NCBI GenBank assembly: GCA_054661495.1 | Contig: BAAFSQ010000454.1 | Coordinates: 1-6,055 of the forward strand | Reading direction: 5' to 3' | Origin: Zygophlyctis sp. KS116 | Taxonomy: Eukaryota; Fungi; Chytridiomycota | DNA length: 6,055 bases | In this document: piece after piece, positions 1 through 6,055 of the stretch | Layout of the letters: each line of letters starts with the position of its first letter | How positions within the stretch are numbered: the first letter of the stretch is position 1 | Position numbers and translations under genes: made by a program | The notes under the pieces: generated by a model | Told to the model about the DNA's origin: nothing | Seen by the model: the letters and a program-made list of their open reading frames with translations, nothing else | Databases searched by the model: none

Positions 1-157
1 AATTTTTATTGGTTTATACACTTTTAATGGCTAGTATATTAAGCATCTTTGATCATGATACATCTTTATTGAATTATTTTAAAGAATTACTAGTGCTCAA
101 TCATTATAAAATCATAAATTGGATGAAAAAACGGCAATATATCATAAATGGTATCTT
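1..157 (+). repeat. Internal 157-bp direct repeat, copy A (also 5495-5651)
   Basis: Matches 454-610 with one mismatch (A109 vs C562); spacing is 453 bp = 151 codons. Confidence 0.95.
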
Positions 158-743
158 GTCTTCTGGAAAGATTTCGAATTCGAAATTTAAGTTTACTATT
201 CTTTATCTTTGGACACTAAACATACTGAAATTTAAAGTCTTGAAAGCATTGGATCTACATGTTATACAACAAACGCGCATGATTGAAAATTGCATTTATA
301 TTTTTGAACGAAACTTGATGGGTGGATATGTTAATGGATTGAATCTTCAGTATATTTTAGAGCAGATACAGTCACTGCTTCTTGGAAAATTTCAACTTGT
401 TTGGAATATTTTTAGAGGTACATATTCCACTGGGACCATTATCGCGTCCCTCCAATTTTTATTGGTTTATACACTTTTAATGGCTAGTATATTAAGCATC
501 TTTGATCATGATACATCTTTATTGAATTATTTTAAAGAATTACTAGTGCTCAATCATTATACAATCATAAATTGGATGAAAAAACGGCAATATATCATAA
601 ATGGTATCTTTTTAGAAAAGAGTATCCATAAAGTTCTCCTAATCTCTCTTTGTTTTTGGAGACTAATACTTAACGTAATACCAATTCAAGTTTCCTGCTT
701 GCACGATGATCGTATATACAAAACAGATCAAGGGAAATTTTAA
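3..743 (+). CDS. ORF-X, C-terminal part (the 244-aa ORF 9-743 is a 5'-truncated piece of the ORF starting at 5104)
   Basis: The frame is open from the window edge. It contains an in-frame duplicated ~52-aa block (FLLVYTLLMASILSIF...QYIINGI) and ends at TAA 741-743, overlapping the APE-RT frame. Confidence 0.68.
   Translation, partial: FLLVYTLLMASILSIFDHDTSLLNYFKELLVLNHYKIINWMKKRQYIINGILSSGKISNSKFKFTILYLWTLNILKFKVLKALDLHVIQQTRMIENCIYIFERNLMGGYVNGLNLQYILEQIQSLLLGKFQLVWNIFRGTYSTGTIIASLQFLLVYTLLMASILSIFDHDTSLLNYFKELLVLNHYTIINWMKKRQYIINGIFLEKSIHKVLLISLCFWRLILNVIPIQVSCLHDDRIYKTDQGKF
171..186. repeat. Perfect 16-bp palindrome (also 5665-5680)
   Basis: ATTTCGAATTCGAAAT is its own reverse complement. 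Confidence 0.85.
454..610 (+). repeat. Internal 157-bp direct repeat, copy B (partial copy at 5948-6055)
   Basis: Matches 1-157 with one mismatch. Confidence 0.95.
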
Positions 744-3739
744 AACTTTTCTACATTAATATTTGCGGGCTTGATCATGTGAAGTTAAGATACTTGGAAA
801 ATAAATTAGATGATGCCAACGAGCCAACCATCATCATCATAGCTGAACACTGGTTCAGTAAATTTTTCAGTCTGCAAGAATCAAGATACTTTTTCTGTAG
901 TACACCTTTAATTAATTACCGTGACGTTGGACATCAAAATGGGGGACTTGCGGTTTTAGCATCTCGGACAGTTATACCATTAATCAAGGAAGCAAATGTG
1001 TCAGAGTTTTCTATACAATTTACAATCGGGTTAGAAACAATCAAGGCAGTTTATCTACCTCCCAGACTGTCCCTAGAAGAAGTCGAAAAAGTAATATCAG
1101 CTGAGACAAATCAAGTATCAATATTGTTAGGAGATATAAATGTACGTTTTGGAAAACTCTTAAATTACAAACGAACTTGGAATACACCTAGGGGACAGAA
1201 GATCATTTCAATCTTAGAAAGTTACGACATGCATTTACAACCGTCAACGGGGAAATTCTCTGGAAATGACCACGTCTTCAGCCGGAAAAATGAAACCTGG
1301 GAATATTATAAGTTAACAGATGCTCAAATGAGAACTGACCATGGAATGATTGATCTTAGCATACCTCTAGACAGACGAATTCCTCACGCTACCATTATCG
1401 GCCAAGAAAAAAGATATGCTTTCTCAATATTAAAAGATCCTATATTTAGAGATGTGATCAAAAATGACTGGATTACTGAACAGCCATTTCTTGTAGAATT
1501 TGTGGGGAAAGTACGCTTCCAGCTTAAATTGGGCAGGATAAAATCTTACCAGTCCGCACTTGAAGTGATCAACATCACATATGATACTCTTGCAGGGGCA
1601 ATAATGAATCTCTGCGAAAGAAACTTCCCAACCTATGACCCAGAAAATATAAAAAGTCAGAGAGCCACATCTCAAAATCTTGATAGTACTAACTGCTCAA
1701 CTGTTTTTGCCATTAGACAGTTTAAAAGATCCCAAAGGTTATATACCCAGGCCCAGAAATTTAAATCTTCAACAGATACTGATGTCTTGCAAGAAGCAGT
1801 GGAGTATTATTCAAACATATACTCTTCAACAACCGGCCAAGCTACATTTGATTGGTCAGATGAGTTAGTATCCAATCATTGTTGGAAAACTGATGCAGAC
1901 CAGATAGCAACAATCATAAAGCAATACAGTTCAGCGAAAGCAGCAGGTCCTGATGGAATGCATTCCTCGCTGCTTAAATGCTTATTGGAAGTTAAAGGAT
2001 TTTCCTCGCTCATAGCCGAGCTCTTTAACATATGCTTAGAATATTCGATTACTCCTCTAGCGTGGAATACATCCCGAATCCACCTTCTGATGAAGGACCC
2101 TTTAACACCATATATAGCTTCATCAAGAGCTGTATCACTTACATGTATGTTTCGAAGATTCTTTGAAAAAATCGTGCTCAGAAATAGTCTAAATGAAACC
2201 TGGAGTCAGTTACATGCAAATCAGGCCGGATTTCGGAAAGGCTGGAGCACCGTATCACATATCCTGTTAAATGATGATATGTGTCGGAGTGGATTTAATA
2301 TCTCAGCTTATTTGGACTTGAAAAGTGCATTTGATGTAGTCGATCACAGATATCTCTTCAAAATACTTAGGCAAAGAGGGGCTCCTATACAAATCTGTAA
2401 ACTCATCTACTCACTCATGGTAAATAACTGCGGATCTACGATAGCAGTGAATGGGATAGTGTCTGAAACAAAGATTCAAAGATCTCGAGGATTGTTCCAA
2501 GGGAGTATTCTCTCACCGATGCTCTTCAATATGCTAATAGATATTCTTGCAGAACAGATAACAGTTGAACTACCCCCATCCACTGTTATTCTCTTGTTTG
2601 CTGATGACATTGTGATCAAAACTAATGACTGGGTTCGATTACAACACGCCTTAGATATCTGCTACAATTGGAGTGCTAACTCCAAAATTGATTGGGGAAT
2701 ACGAAAATGCGGCGTAATTTCTAAATATGAAAGTTATCCAGTATTATTGGGAGCTGAAGTAGTCCCTGTTGTTTCTCAGTACAAATATCTGGGCCTTCCT
2801 TTCACAGCAAACGGAGTAGATTGGAAACAATATCTTTACAAGATCATGGACAAACATAATAAGTTTATCCAGGGAATTCAACTTCAATCACAAGTTTGGA
2901 CAATGAACAATAGGCTTATAATATATAGGACCTTTGTTCGACCGATCCTTGACTATTGCCTTCCTGTACTAACTCGTTGGATATCTAAACAGCAAGACTC
3001 CAAAGAGATGTTTGGTCAACTTGAAGCTACATATGGTGATGGAATCAAATGGATAATGGGCAGAGACCGTCCTTTAAAAATACTTGAAATAATTACAGGC
3101 CTAGGATCCTTCAAATTTAGAATTTCTCAGGTTGAAGCTTCCCTGGCAAACCATATCCACCTCCTCCAACAAACAAATCCACTTATTTCTTATATGAAAT
3201 CACATTTTCTTTCATTAAATAAGAATTTTATTCTTATGGACTGCAAAAAGAGTAGAATACTTCAAGAATGGAGAGTTTATTTTAAATCGGAAAAATTTCC
3301 CCTTAAATATAGAACATGGCTATTAAAACAGAAATGGCTGGAATATAAAATGCTTCCAGGAAAGTTGCACCACTATATACTTCCTCGAAGTCGAACCAAA
3401 TCTGGGGCGGACAAACTTATGCAACAAAAGTATCCAATAGCAAACAAATCTCTTCAATGGCGCTGTAATTTCTCTTTCATCAATAAATACTGTCCCGAAT
3501 GCTTCAACAAGTTCAATAGAAGACACTTGGCAAGATGTAATTTGTACTCACTATTAGATGAAAGGACACAAAGTATGTTTAAAACTACCCAATACAGGGT
3601 TGATATGAGCAAGATAAATTCTATAATCAATCAAGATGCTGAAAATTACACAGTTTTGGACTTCTACCTCAACAATGGAGATTATGACAGTTTTTTACAT
3701 CTGTACGATCAAATCTCAACACTATTGGCAGAAGTCTAG
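710..3739 (+). CDS. LINE ORF2-type polyprotein: apurinic/apyrimidinic-like endonuclease + reverse transcriptase + CCHC zinc knuckle (ORF track calls 779-3739 from GTG; the true start is upstream)
   Basis: APE motifs: LKLFYINICGL (740-772, upstream of the called GTG), IIIIAEHW, GGLAVL, AVYLPP, LLGDIN, NDHVF, TDHGMI. RT motifs: KAAGPDG, RAVSL..FRRFFEKI, QAGFRKGWST, YLDLKSAFDVV, RGLFQGSILSPMLF, LFADD (FADD 2597-2608), YKYLG. The frame is open from 710 (TGA at 707-709) to TAG 3737-3739. Confidence 0.95.
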   Translation, partial: SYIQNRSREILKLFYINICGLDHVKLRYLENKLDDANEPTIIIIAEHWFSKFFSLQESRYFFCSTPLINYRDVGHQNGGLAVLASRTVIPLIKEANVSEFSIQFTIGLETIKAVYLPPRLSLEEVEKVISAETNQVSILLGDINVRFGKLLNYKRTWNTPRGQKIISILESYDMHLQPSTGKFSGNDHVFSRKNETWEYYKLTDAQMRTDHGMIDLSIPLDRRIPHATIIGQEKRYAFSILKDPIFRDVIKNDWITEQPFLVEFVGKVRFQLKLGRIKSYQSALEVINITYDTLAGAIMNLCERNFPTYDPENIKSQRATSQNLDSTNCSTVFAIRQFKRSQRLYTQAQKFKSSTDTDVLQEAVEYYSNIYSSTTGQATFDWSDELVSNHCWKTDADQIATIIKQYSSAKAAGPDGMHSSLLKCLLEVKGFSSLIAELFNICLEYSITPLAWNTSRIHLLMKDPLTPYIASSRAVSLTCMFRRFFEKIVLRNSLNETWSQLHANQAGFRKGWSTVSHILLNDDMCRSGFNISAYLDLKSAFDVVDHRYLFKILRQRGAPIQICKLIYSLMVNNCGSTIAVNGIVSETKIQRSRGLFQGSILSPMLFNMLIDILAEQITVELPPSTVILLFADDIVIKTNDWVRLQHALDICYNWSANSKIDWGIRKCGVISKYESYPVLLGAEVVPVVSQYKYLGLPFTANGVDWKQYLYKIMDKHNKFIQGIQLQSQVWTMNNRLIIYRTFVRPILDYCLPVLTRWISKQQDSKEMFGQLEATYGDGIKWIMGRDRPLKILEIITGLGSFKFRISQVEASLANHIHLLQQTNPLISYMKSHFLSLNKNFILMDCKKSRILQEWRVYFKSEKFPLKYRTWLLKQKWLEYKMLPGKLHHYILPRSRTKSGADKLMQQKYPIANKSLQWRCNFSFINKYCPECFNKFNRRHLARCNLYSLLDERTQSMFKTTQYRVDMSKINSIINQDAENYTVLDFYLNNGDYDSFLHLYDQISTLLAEV
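740..1351 (+). other. APE (exonuclease-endonuclease-phosphatase superfamily) endonuclease domain
   Basis: Conserved catalytic-type residues occur in the right order: N (INICGL), E (AEHW), Y (VYLP), D-x-N (GDIN 1130-1141), D (NDH), DH (TDH 1334-1342). Confidence 0.88.
1937..2794 (+). other. Non-LTR reverse transcriptase domain
   Basis: All canonical blocks from KAAGPDG to YKYLG are present, with an intact FADD catalytic motif. Confidence 0.95.
3491..3538 (+). other. C-terminal CCHC zinc-knuckle motif of ORF2
   Basis: CPECFNKFNRRHLARC = C-x2-C-x7-H-x3-C, at the position typical of LINE ORF2 proteins. Confidence 0.8.
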
Positions 3740-3745
3740 AAAAAT

Positions 3746-3783
3746 CCGTTCTCTTTCCTATATAAAAGGTTTTCCGAGAACGG
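3746..3783 (+). other. Stem-loop just after the RT stop codon
   Basis: CCGTTCTC (3746-3753) pairs perfectly with GAGAACGG (3776-3783). An inner CCT/AGG stem closes the loop ATATAAA. Confidence 0.6.
3759..3768 (+). promoter_or_regulatory. Candidate TATA box
   Basis: TATATAAAAG matches TATAWAWR and lies about 100 bp upstream of the ORF1 ATG, in the only non-coding segment. Confidence 0.5.
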
Positions 3784-3816
3784 TCGGGGTTCAACTCGTG
3801 CAAAATAATTAAAATT

Positions 3817-3822
3817 AATAAA
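3817..3822 (+). terminator. Candidate polyadenylation signal
   Basis: AATAAA 78 bp after the RT stop, preceded by ATTAAA (3808-3813). The AT-rich context lowers significance. Confidence 0.35.
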
Positions 3823-3863
3823 TCTCTTACTTCCTAACCCTAAGTTCATCTGAAAATGGATCT

Positions 3864-5114
3864 ATGAATATGGATGAGGAAGAAGATGCTAGTTTGGTGG
3901 ATCTTGAAAACTTCGAAAAATCATCTTCGAATGAAACATTATCGGATATTAACTTGGCTTTAGAAAAAAGAATTTCTAATCTTGAAAAAGAACTTAATGA
4001 ATTGAAAGAAACTACAAAAGCTTATGTTGATCGATTTGGAACTATTGAAAAAGAAATAGTGAAATCAAGAATGGAGAATACTAATGCTACTAATGAATTA
4101 GCAAAACTTATGAAAGTTATGATTGCTCAACAAAATAATAAGTCTCTCGATGAAACTTTTGATCAGGGAAAATCCGTTAGTTTCCAAAGACCAGATACCT
4201 TTAATAGAAAAAGTACGAATACCAATGCTCCTGTTTCGATTTTAAAAAACACTGATACAAGCAGCAAGAAAATTAGTTATGCAGAAGTAACAAAGGAAAA
4301 TGTTAAAGGCTATGATACAAATGAGATTGTATCTCCAAAAAATGGAGTTAATAATGATCAAGAGAAAGAACTGAAAGCATTCTTAGAAACATCCAGAAAA
4401 GCAGAGAGACGAAAGGTGGAAAGAGAAACAATAACTCCTTCGGAATTAAAAATGGTTTACATTAGAGGGTTCGGTTCCACGATGACAATTTCGAAAATTA
4501 AAGCACATCTTTACAAATTGAAATTCTTACTTACAAAGATTCGTAATATTAGATATGTTGGAATTTCGACTGTAGAATTCATGGTTGAAGAATCTTATTA
4601 TATACGATTCATGAAAAGATTTCAGGGAATGGATACTCACTTTACAATTATCGAAAACTATAACCTTGTAAAAAATCCTTGGGAAAACATTCCAGATCAA
4701 GAATTCAACTCTAAGATCAGATCAGCAACTCAAAGAATCTATAAAAGTTCTATGAAATCTAATGATCGTACTGTCCAAATTTTCTTTTCGGAATTAATTG
4801 ACTCACTTGGGCCCGTTGCAATAAAAGAGGCAGAAAGATGTAACGAAGAAATAGATCGAACATCAAAAGAATCTCATAAAAAAGATGTTACACAGAATTC
4901 AGATAAGGAAGTGACAGGGCAAAACTTTTCTGATAGTATTCTTGTTGAGCCTCCTAAAAAGAAGAATGAAGAAAGTAAATCAACAGACATTTCTGAAATA
5001 GAAATTGAAGAAAATGACTTAGACTCTGTTGACTTAACGAACGATTCAAATAACAATTTGGAAAATGAAGACATCGAAATGGACAATATAGATCATACTA
5101 ATAATGATCAGTAG
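3864..5114 (+). CDS. ORF1 / gag-like nucleic-acid-binding protein of the retroelement (416 aa)
   Basis: N-terminal heptad coiled coil (LEKRISNLEKELNELKE), a low-complexity linker with SYAEV, an RRM-like block (LKMVYIRGF...IKAHL...IRNIRYVG..TVEFMV) and an acidic D/E/N-rich tail. This layout is typical of LINE ORF1 proteins. No CCHC knuckle was seen. Confidence 0.78.
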   Translation: MNMDEEEDASLVDLENFEKSSSNETLSDINLALEKRISNLEKELNELKETTKAYVDRFGTIEKEIVKSRMENTNATNELAKLMKVMIAQQNNKSLDETFDQGKSVSFQRPDTFNRKSTNTNAPVSILKNTDTSSKKISYAEVTKENVKGYDTNEIVSPKNGVNNDQEKELKAFLETSRKAERRKVERETITPSELKMVYIRGFGSTMTISKIKAHLYKLKFLLTKIRNIRYVGISTVEFMVEESYYIRFMKRFQGMDTHFTIIENYNLVKNPWENIPDQEFNSKIRSATQRIYKSSMKSNDRTVQIFFSELIDSLGPVAIKEAERCNEEIDRTSKESHKKDVTQNSDKEVTGQNFSDSILVEPPKKKNEESKSTDISEIEIEENDLDSVDLTNDSNNNLENEDIEMDNIDHTNNDQ

Positions 5115-6055
5115 GTCCAAAAAAACCTGCAGGCAAATTATTTTATGTGACTATCAATTGGTATCAGTGAGAAGATACTTAAATAGATTCACTCAAAATT
5201 ATTTGGATGATACTTCTACTACAAAACGCTCTAATTCTGGCATACTTTCAAAAGAGTATAGAATATTTAACCATCTGAAACTTAACTTTGACCACTGCAA
5301 TTGGACGATATTAAAATTGACAAAAAAATGTTTACATGGGATCATGATAGGCATAGTACAAAACCCAAGGTTAATGAAAATTGTTCAACATGTCAATTTA
5401 GACAAGTGGTTTCGCCATATTGGGTATCAAGACTATATCATATTGCCAAGAGATATGTGTAAAGTTAATTATTCCAGTGGGATAAAACTCCCTAAATTTT
5501 TATTGGTTTATACACTTTTAATGGCTAGTATATTAAGCATCTTTGATCATGATACATCTTTATTGAATTATTTTAAAGAATTACTAGTGCTCAATCATTA
5601 TAAAATCATAAATTGGATGAAAAAACGGCAATATATCATAAATGGTATCTTGTCTTCTGGAAAGATTTCGAATTCGAAATTTAAGTTTACTATTCTTTAT
5701 CTTTGGACACTAAACATACTGAAATTTAAAGTCTTGAAAGCATTGGATCTACATGTTATACAACAAACGCGCATGATTGAAAATTGCATTTATATTTTTG
5801 AACGAAACTTGATGGGTGGATATGTTAATGGATTGAATCTTCAGTATATTTTAGAGCAGATACAGTCACTGCTTCTTGGAAAATTTCAACTTGTTTGGAA
5901 TATTTTTAGAGGTACATATTCCACTGGGACCATTATCGCGTCCCTCCAATTTTTATTGGTTTATACACTTTTAATGGCTAGTATATTAAGCATCTTTGAT
6001 CATGATACATCTTTATTGAATTATTTTAAAGAATTACTAGTGCTCAATCATTATA
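5104..6055 (+). CDS. ORF-X, N-terminal part (runs off the window and continues at 562-743 through the terminal overlap; 377 aa in total); hydrophobic protein of unknown function
   Basis: Hand translation from ATG 5104 (in-frame TAG upstream at 5089-5091) gives MISRSKKTCRQIILCDYQLVSVRRYLNRF...YSSGIKLPKFLLVYTLL... with no stop before the window end. It is in frame with the 9-743 ORF of the first copy, and the ORF track probably omits it because no stop lies in the window. Confidence 0.7.
   Translation, partial: MISRSKKTCRQIILCDYQLVSVRRYLNRFTQNYLDDTSTTKRSNSGILSKEYRIFNHLKLNFDHCNWTILKLTKKCLHGIMIGIVQNPRLMKIVQHVNLDKWFRHIGYQDYIILPRDMCKVNYSSGIKLPKFLLVYTLLMASILSIFDHDTSLLNYFKELLVLNHYKIINWMKKRQYIINGILSSGKISNSKFKFTILYLWTLNILKFKVLKALDLHVIQQTRMIENCIYIFERNLMGGYVNGLNLQYILEQIQSLLLGKFQLVWNIFRGTYSTGTIIASLQFLLVYTLLMASILSIFDHDTSLLNYFKELLVLNHY
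5495..6055 (+). repeat. Terminal direct repeat, right copy (561 bp)
   Basis: Identical by eye to 1-561. Confidence 0.97.

Follow-up and report, generated by a model that had tools for sequence, protein, structure and literature searches.

The 6,055-bp contig BAAFSQ010000454.1 from the assembly of Zygophlyctis sp. KS116 (GCA_054661495.1), which in its entirety is called the window here, contains a long interspersed nuclear element (LINE) that closes on itself as a unit of 5,494 bp. The element is a retrotransposon without long terminal repeats and of the apurinic/apyrimidinic endonuclease (APE) type, as its nuclease, its reverse transcriptase (RT), 5'-truncated copies and a tail of variable length show. 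Probably, the contig arose by collapse of sequence during assembly and represents a multicopy L1-like APE LINE that is integrated in chromosomes, carries a telomere-repeat tail and inserts head-to-tail beside its own copies. This interpretation is based on the structure of the element, its tail, multiple junctions, 5' truncations, arrays formed by its relatives, a strand bias of the telomere repeats and intact catalytic residues. Other contigs and loci are designated by L numbers.

In a self-comparison of the window, positions 1-561 were identical to positions 5495-6055 with 0 mismatches, which defines the repeat unit of 5,494 bp. The circularised unit contains three open reading frames (ORFs) on the same strand, ORF1, ORF-X and ORF2, which overlap end to end and are followed by a gap of 124 bp between the ORF2 stop and the ORF1 start codon. 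An internal direct repeat of 157 bp within ORF-X (1-157 and 454-610) differs by one mismatch, A109/C562, and its two copies are preceded by A5494 and C453. The window begins at the first base of this repeat and stops one base short of the mismatch, with the result that both contig ends sit on the repeat.

1..561, plus strand: terminal redundancy, copy 1; exact match to 5495-6055; assembly wrap, the point being crossed as linear sequence in L095
5495..6055, plus strand: terminal redundancy, copy 2; exact match to 1-561
1..157 (also 5495-5651), plus strand: internal repeat module, copy 1; within ORF-X and in frame with copy 2 (spacing 453 nt = 151 codons)
454..610, plus strand: internal repeat module, copy 2; one mismatch at 562

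A preliminary description of the window, made from its letters alone, had recognised this architecture correctly: the identical ends and the unit length, the limits set by the internal repeat, the path R-A-R-B-R-A-R (108 + 345 + 108 + 4933 + 108 + 345 + 108 = 6055), the start of ORF1 within 124 bp of the RT stop and the coverage of about 98% of the unit by ORFs were all recovered. It had also noted that ORF-X reads through the junction of the unit. The frame is indeed open across 5494/5495; this wrap is nevertheless an assembly coordinate and not a biological junction, because contig L095 (GCA_041191245.1, JBEEPD010000224.1; 3.6 kb, 99% identical to the window element) contains ORF1, an intact 377-aa ORF-X and ORF2 as plain linear sequence. 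Likewise, the 'perfect' identity of the ends, which had been taken as support for a homogeneous array, is the expected product of a collapsed de Bruijn loop and provides no independent evidence for such an array. The closed loop is likely explained by a single tail-to-head junction of near-identical copies, with the assembler halting at the internal repeat. The scaffold L001 contains a gap of 100 N exactly at the 157-bp repeat region (L001:1089-1188), which indicates that assemblies of other samples are broken by the repeat as well. Scans of the window with Rfam (E<=1) and for tRNAs revealed no RNA genes.

The closure of the loop as a real head-to-tail junction between element copies is supported by the 124-bp gap, inside which the element boundary lies at 3844/3845. 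The gap comprises, in this order, the 3' untranslated region (UTR), AATAAA, CTCTTACTT, the tail CCTAACCCTAA, a single G and the 5' start TTCATCT, with the ATG of ORF1 19 nt further on; its sequence runs ...AATAAATCTCTTACTTCCTAACCCTAAG up to the boundary and TTCATCTGAAAATGGATCTATGAATATGG behind it. The tail corresponds to about 1.8 units of the telomere C-strand repeat. No A-run was present at the tail-head junction, the sole A7 runs in the unit being located at 5119 and 5322. The reported lack of a poly(A) tail was thus borne out, and the element nonetheless has a tail, a telomere repeat after AATAAA, as do its relatives. An extra G is often found at full-length L1 insertions, and the G preceding the 5' end of the element is similar.

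3740..3832, plus strand: 3' UTR with hairpin (3746-3783), AATAAA (3817-3822) and conserved terminal CTCTTACTT
3833..3843, plus strand: 3' tail CCTAACCCTAA; tail length varies among copies of the same element (13, 14, 17 and 36 nt)
3844..3863, plus strand: head of the next copy with extra G, 5' end TTCATCT and a 5' UTR of about 19 nt; compare L096 and both full-length copies of L002

In the window, and in 8 of 9 displayed 3' UTRs of relatives, AATAAA was located 10-16 nt upstream of the tail, the short UTR of L010 being without it; it precedes the telomere-type tail in L002, L004, L007, L009, L011, L012, L013 and L016. This placement suggests transcript cleavage at about the tail, though the DNA carries no copied A-run. 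The 8-bp hairpin of the 3' UTR, formed by CCGTTCTC and GAGAACGG (fold z = -2.1), may be a structure recognised by the RT. Stems of unrelated sequence were found in the 3' UTRs of L004, L007 and L009, and none in L010 and L002. A HeT-A-like promoter in the 3' UTR was considered for TATATAAAA at 3762 and dropped, as the motif is not kept in relatives.

The same element, 96.8-99.6% identical to that of the window, was found on seven other contigs from other samples (L001 and L091-L096), and the cluster of RT sequences at >=90% identity comprises seven members from ENA, JGI and NCBI. The 3' ends on these contigs were as follows.

L001: tail CCTAACCCTAACC, then TGGCTTGCGTCGGG...
L091, first 3' end: tail CCTAACCCTAACCC, with a 5'-truncated copy (final 737 nt of the element) immediately behind it
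L091, second 3' end: tail CCTAACCCTAACCCTAA, then 431 nt of unrelated sequence
L092, L093 and L094 (three samples): irregular telomere-like tract of 36 nt, then TGCTATAAAC...

Including the window, tails of the same element thus range from 11 to 36 nt. On L096, the homology starts exactly at the G3844-TTCATCT of the window after an unrelated, non-telomeric flank. In total, five 3' junctions including that of the window and two 5' junctions with the same first nucleotide are available for this element, and the truncated copy on L091 adjoins a long copy directly. The diversity of junctions, the variable tails and the 5' truncation point to target-primed reverse transcription into chromosomal DNA and not to an autonomous circle. 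The element is probably a multicopy chromosomal retrotransposon, and the absence of host flanks, which had been regarded as its property, does not hold for its copies elsewhere.

Several peculiarities of these contigs were recorded. None of them carries an informative gene of the host. L095 was deposited within a metagenome-assembled genome of a 'Bacteroidota bacterium' and represents a mis-binned eukaryotic retrotransposon. The flank behind the tail on L001 (L001:4923-4977) contains the short tandem motif GGCTTGCGTCGGGA with a period of about 22 nt and possibly represents subtelomeric satellite DNA of the host. The unrelated 5' flank L096:1-141 extends the open frame of ORF1 by 47 codons in front of the usual ATG, which may be due to chance (P about 0.03) or to read-through from a neighbouring gene or element. 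Scans for the 3' end with exact 17-mers in genome_contigs and viral_contigs yielded 7 loci, none of them similar to the element, and these are chance matches.

The evidence for a wider family comes from fetched relatives and 80 further loci. A search with ORF2 returned 34 close-family proteins, nearly all from metagenome contigs of 3-6 kb, a contig size to be expected because the family is a high-copy repeat. Relatives with RT identities of 26-62% carry the same 3' end, ...AATAAA-N10-16-CTTAAY-NCCTAACCCTAA(CCCTAA)0-2, and the flanks behind it are diverse; the copies on L007 and L008, whose encoded RT is the same, differ in tail length and flank. The tracts have a pronounced strand preference, with 54 CCTAACC tracts in sense orientation (35 of 44 family loci) against 6 in antisense, compared with 5 sense and 9 antisense tracts in a control of 51 unrelated LINE loci. 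Junction telomere repeats in one fixed orientation are a feature of telomere-repeat-specific LINEs, and the family shares it.

Head-to-tail arrangements are frequent in the family. About 33 true 3' tails are followed by downstream sequence, and seven of these run at once into a family copy of the same orientation, with more cases on L013, L019 and L025. The 10.6-kb contig L002 contains three head-to-tail copies, two of them full-length with 70-80% DNA identity and the third truncated at about residue 237 of ORF2, with 46% amino-acid identity to the ORF2 of copy 1. The copies meet at CCTAACCCTAACC followed by TCATCT and at CCTAACCTAAG, and both full-length copies start with TCATCT after CTAAC(C). 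On L003, from another sample, the first copy of L002 lies beside a different truncated relative. In L097, which originates from the same sample as L091 and encodes an ORF2 44% identical to that of the window, ORF2 is followed by AATAAA, CTTAATTCCTAACCCTAACC and the next ORF1. 5'-truncated relatives were present on L002, L003, L013 and L019. Telomere repeats also occur on the 5' side of copies in the window, L002, L047 and L026, and not in L096: L047 has (CCCTAA)3.5 upstream of the copy, and (CCCTAA)15 stands at the start of contig L026, from a distant relative, ahead of a 5'-truncated copy whose 5' end is distal.

Sublineages with RT identities of 44-62% were detected in the same samples (L091 and L097 in ENA ERZ19570925, L008 and L092 in JGI 3300043548), and diverged sublineages occupy the same arrays in L002 and L003. 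Probably, several lineages share one target niche in one host genome. The subfamilies of the Ga03075xx relatives on long contigs are only 65-87% identical. Some tails deviate from the common type. L004 and L005, which encode the same 978-aa RT (37% identical to that of the window), have CCTAA-type or irregular tails, CCCCTAACCTAACCTTAATCC and CCCCCCCTAACACTAACCTAACCTA (L004:3307-3318, L005:3250-3270), and these may track a host with a TTAGG-like telomere. A copia-type RVT_2 fragment is located 1.2 kb downstream on L004. L014 (3150-3221) ends in ...AATAAACATTATCCCTACCC with a degenerate telomere-like motif, and another kind of simple repeat, (TTTGGTTC)3, comes next.

The proteins of the element agree with its classification as an APE-type LINE, which the preliminary description had likewise proposed and which Pfam matches, catalytic residues in 30 relatives and matches to L1 structures corroborated.

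737..3739, plus strand: ORF2 (APE endonuclease, RT, CCHC motif); putative start ATT 737, 4 nt before the ORF-X stop
779..1499, plus strand: APE-type endonuclease domain; Pfam Exo_endo_phos_2, E 9.5e-4 (weak)
2120..2800, plus strand: RT domain (RVT_1, FADD); Pfam E 4e-23
3491..3538, plus strand: C-terminal CX2CX7HX3C (CCHC) motif
3864..5114, plus strand: ORF1 (416 aa); coiled coil 24-97, RRM-like 195-263, helical C-terminal part

Across the 30 relatives, the endonuclease residues D119/N121, D164 and D187/H188 were invariant and E23 and H165 nearly so; A608/D609/D610 of the RT were invariant, as were C905 and C920 of the CCHC motif, with C908 and H916 nearly invariant. A Cys-His motif at the C-terminus of ORF2 is a feature of the L1/Tx1 group. 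The best solved match of the family profile was human L1 ORF2p (8uw3; endonuclease and RT, E 3.9e-51). The profile also matched the human L1 endonuclease (1vyb, E 3.7e-8) and, in the RT only, R2; the same search gave no match to the TRAS1 or the R1Bm endonuclease at E<=0.01. With L1 ORF2p as the best solved relative, the element is provisionally called L1-like. The sole named near relative is annotated as 'LINE-1 ORF2 [Smittium culicis]', and more distant named matches derive from Phenoliferia and Amoeboaphelidium. Searches of PDB sequences with the endonuclease domain alone and with the ORF1 profile returned nothing useful. The ORF2 frame is open from 710. The ORF-calling tool placed the start at GTG 779, and initiation at the first ATG, 1229, would leave the APE domain incomplete; the putative start at 737 agrees with the codons at this position in L097 and L007, and homology to L007 begins at window position 725.

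ORF1 is homologous to ORF1 of L009 (3e-52), L010, L002 and L097. Its AlphaFold2 model consists of a long helix (24-97) and a beta-alpha-beta RRM-like domain (195-263), and the best Foldseek matches were RRM domains, although weak ones (E 0.02). ORF1 had no Pfam Transposase_22 match, no sequence match in the PDB and no CCHC zinc knuckles in its sequence; Pfam matches of ORF1, of ORF-X and of upstream ORFs in the relatives were limited to sub-threshold noise. At L097:4578-4800 and L002:86-400, the start of ORF1 is rich in cysteines (CxxC ... CxxC, zinc-ribbon-like), a motif absent from the shorter ORF1 of the window.

Between ORF1 and ORF2 the element carries the third frame, ORF-X, which spans the wrap of the contig.

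5104..6055, plus strand: ORF-X, first part (377 codons in all); ATG 5104, 8 nt before the ORF1 stop; continues at 562-743
562..743, plus strand: ORF-X, last part; stop TAA 741-743, inside the open ORF2 frame

The inter-ORF region contains 373 open codons, whereas none of 5,000 composition-matched simulations exceeded 163, and the other five frames each have 25-39 stops. The G content at first codon positions is only 0.15. Among 1.84 billion protein representatives, no homolog of ORF-X other than one distant analogue was found, and no confident fold was predicted (pLDDT, the predicted local distance difference test, 34.8). Copies differ by substitutions at a higher density than in ORF1 or ORF2, and most of these are non-synonymous (17:4 and 17:3; about 4-6:1). 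The single distant analogue, the low pLDDT and the non-synonymous excess rule out that ORF-X is a known protein. The analogue, P0059, occupies the same slot between ORF1 and ORF2 in L097 and contains its own 326-bp repeat at a spacing of 462 bp. In L007, a close relative (62% RT identity), this slot holds a 159-bp unit repeated 4.9 times in frame, and a weak motif, LNxxYV...LKFQ(L/M), is common to the window, L097 and L007. In the more distant L009 and L002, the ORF-X region is lacking and the ORF1 stop overlaps the ORF2 start (ATGA). We infer that ORF-X is a repeat-derived, lineage-specific and fast-evolving frame, selected mainly to stay open and not for its sequence.

The arrangement of stop and start codons is consistent with a translation of ORF1, ORF-X and ORF2 by termination-reinitiation coupling. 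In L097, the ATG of ORF-X overlaps the ORF1 stop (ATGA) and the ATG of ORF2 precedes the ORF-X stop by 4 nt; the window and L007 have ATT at the position of this ORF2 start codon (ATTTTAA). A canonical -1 slippery heptamer was considered for the overlap of ORF-X and ORF2 and rejected. The sequence TTTAAAA is present there, but in the ORF2 frame and not in that of ORF-X. A coupled third ORF built from repeats would be a modest structural novelty.

The following course of events would account for the self-adjacent insertions. The RNA of the element would end in a short (CCCUAA)n just after AAUAAA, instead of poly(A), and the APE nuclease would nick (TTAGGG)n DNA, either telomeric or telomere-like, in its G-strand. 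The 3'-OH released by the nick could then pair with the CCCUAA tail and prime target-primed reverse transcription. Each insertion would bring a new (CCCTAA)n tail and with it a fresh target, and since the tails of resident copies would also serve as targets, new copies would land beside old ones in the same orientation and form head-to-tail arrays with about two repeat units between them. Such use of the tail could give rise to mixed-sublineage arrays both at ends, as on L026, and in contig interiors, as on L021, L028 and L039. In the assembly graph, one junction of tail, G and 5' start (3833-3851) would join the end of the element to its start and produce the 5,494-bp loop. Translation would proceed in the order ORF1, ORF-X and ORF2 via the coupled stop and start codons, with ORF2 starting from the AUU located 4 nt before the ORF-X stop.

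Beside a homogeneous tandem array, the preliminary description had proposed an extrachromosomal circle, a retroplasmid-like LINE. The element would then be present mainly as a 5,494-bp DNA circle, and the window would go round it 1.1 times. The exact self-closure of the contig and the occurrence of relatives almost only on contigs of 3-6 kb would fit such a circle, and tandem arrays can yield circles by recombination, so that some may exist. Nothing positive was found for it, however, and we regard it as extremely improbable. An overlap of the contig ends results equally from a tandem junction. Copies of the same element show five 3' junctions including that of the window, one has another 5' flank and one is 5'-truncated; a retrotransposition-type tail is located at the very point of closure, and the arrays of diverged copies in relatives are not obtainable from a circle. 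Short contigs are normal for a high-copy repeat in a metagenome, and the conserved APE nuclease implies integration. Very unlikely, too, is a pure assembly chimera, with the loop resulting from k-mers that telomere-like sequence has in common with dispersed copies, and without a counterpart of the tail-to-head junction in the genome. A low-complexity tail is common to copies and subfamilies of one sample (L091/L097 and L008/L092), and mis-joins at CCTAACCCTAA are conceivable; yet the tail runs into the exact 5' end (G followed by TTCATCT), which L096 confirmed independently, and equivalent full-length junctions were obtained in two other lineages from other assemblers or samples (L002 and L097). 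An 11-nt tail is, moreover, far below the usual k-mers of assemblers, so reads would have to span it.

An ordinary dispersed LINE with a 3' microsatellite tail that resembles the telomere repeat by chance, and with no targeting of telomeres or of its own tails, appears quite unlikely. Simple-repeat ends are common among LINEs, the flanks behind the tails are diverse and the 5' flank of L096 is non-telomeric, but self-adjacency is far too frequent for this explanation, telomere repeats precede the copy on L047 and form a terminal array on L026, and the CCTAA-type tails of L004 and L005 look as if they followed another host telomere motif. Nuclease-free priming at chromosome ends has been proposed for HeT-A/TART and for endonuclease-deficient Penelope-like elements. 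For the present element it would mean that the G-overhang pairs with the CCCUAA tail and that true terminal arrays arise, between whose copies telomerase adds a few repeats. The tracts on the sense strand, which place the 5' ends distally, the terminal (CCCTAA)15 capping a 5'-truncated copy on L026, the short junction tracts and the unrelated flanks behind the tails, as expected if any eroded end was healed, are in line with it. Strict conservation of the APE catalytic residues argues for use of the nuclease, however, and the copies of distant relatives are interstitial on long contigs; we consider it rather unlikely. The two routes are not mutually exclusive, and nuclease-independent priming on the telomere overhang is a possible second one.

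Several observations weigh against the interpretation as a telomere-repeat-targeting, self-adjacent chromosomal LINE. The loop, the junctions and the chromosomal position were deduced from assembled contigs. No copy of the window element has both flanks on one contig, and the repeat junctions mask any target-site duplication. Only 11-36 nt of repeat separate the element from its flanks, no long telomere array adjoins its copies, and the 5' flank of L096 lacks telomere repeats. In distant relatives on contigs of 90-134 kb the copies are interstitial. A comparison of the window ORF2 with the locus DNA of the Smittium culicis relative (L098, a spliced gene model) revealed no telomere-type tail. 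The family may hence be telomere-repeat-tailed rather than strictly telomere-specific.

Telomere-associated LINEs with comparable features are known from several hosts. TRAS1 and SART1 of Bombyx mori are also APE-type LINEs with two main ORFs and one fixed orientation in telomeric repeats, and in TRAS as in the present element the sense strand is continuous with the C-strand. ORF1 and ORF2 of SART1 are translationally coupled by overlapping stop and start codons. TRAS and SART elements are members of the R1 clade; their tails are poly(A), and their ORF1 contains CCHC zinc knuckles. The window element, in contrast, has no poly(A), a coiled-coil/RRM-like ORF1, an endonuclease profile matching L1 and a third ORF, and the features of the R1 clade are absent. 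Nearest in kind, judged by description, are Tx1-1_ACar of Anolis, one of the site-specific Tx1/L1-group LINEs, and Zepp of Chlorella vulgaris. Tx1-1_ACar differs in its vertebrate host, and we know of no third ORF in it. Zepp, as Higashiyama et al. reportedly found in 1997, forms nested head-to-tail clusters by insertion into the tails of earlier copies; its tail is poly(A), whereas here the tail is the telomere repeat itself. Tx1-1_ACar is an L1-group APE LINE inside (TTAGGG)n telomeric repeats (PMC10088271, PMC5537684), and Zepp is a LINE-like, telomere-associated element (PMC10088271).

The fungal elements MoTeR1/2, FoTeR and Cnl1 have short telomere-repeat junction tracts, chromosome-end arrays and internal variable tandem repeats, and they encode a restriction-like endonuclease and affiliate with the CRE/SLACS clade (PMC12857005). 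The window element resembles them in its way of working and is not one of them, as it has an N-terminal APE domain and an L1-like RT. HeT-A, TART and TAHRE form head-to-tail arrays with 3' ends centromere-ward and 5' ends distal (PMC10088271). The comparison with these arrays, drawn already in the preliminary description, pointed in the right direction. The three elements, however, are poly(A)-tailed members of the jockey clade and take the place of telomerase repeats, whereas CCCTAA units without an A-run are found at every junction here, which sets the present element apart from them. The endonuclease-deficient Penelope-like elements Athena and Coprina carry short reverse-complement telomere repeats at the 3' end, which are thought to pair with the G-overhang. 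Their location is terminal (10.1101/2021.04.23.441226). They differ in their RT class and their lack of a nuclease, the APE domain being conserved in the family described here. Retroplasmids are distinguished from the window element by its chromosomal junctions.

For metagenome analyses, the contig holds a warning: a self-closing contig with a retrotransposition tail at the closure point is not evidence of a circular replicon. A more far-reaching interpretation, which we find unlikely, is that several co-resident lineages of the L1-like family, in an AT-rich microbial eukaryote that is perhaps an early-diverging fungus, build long head-to-tail terminal arrays interleaved with telomerase repeats and contribute to chromosome-end maintenance, that excised circles could amplify the element and that ORF-X is a new accessory component of LINEs. 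If true, such terminal arrays would be a microbial counterpart of the chromosome ends of Drosophila or Bombyx. Telomere-targeted LINEs arose independently several times, as in TRAS/SART, Tx1-1_ACar, Zepp, GilM/GilT, MoTeR/FoTeR/Cnl1 and HeT-A/TART. The family described here would add an L1-like APE lineage whose tail is the telomere repeat, which is widespread in environmental assemblies and in which diverged sublineages share a niche, and with its tail acting as target it would offer a simple model of self-perpetuating arrays.

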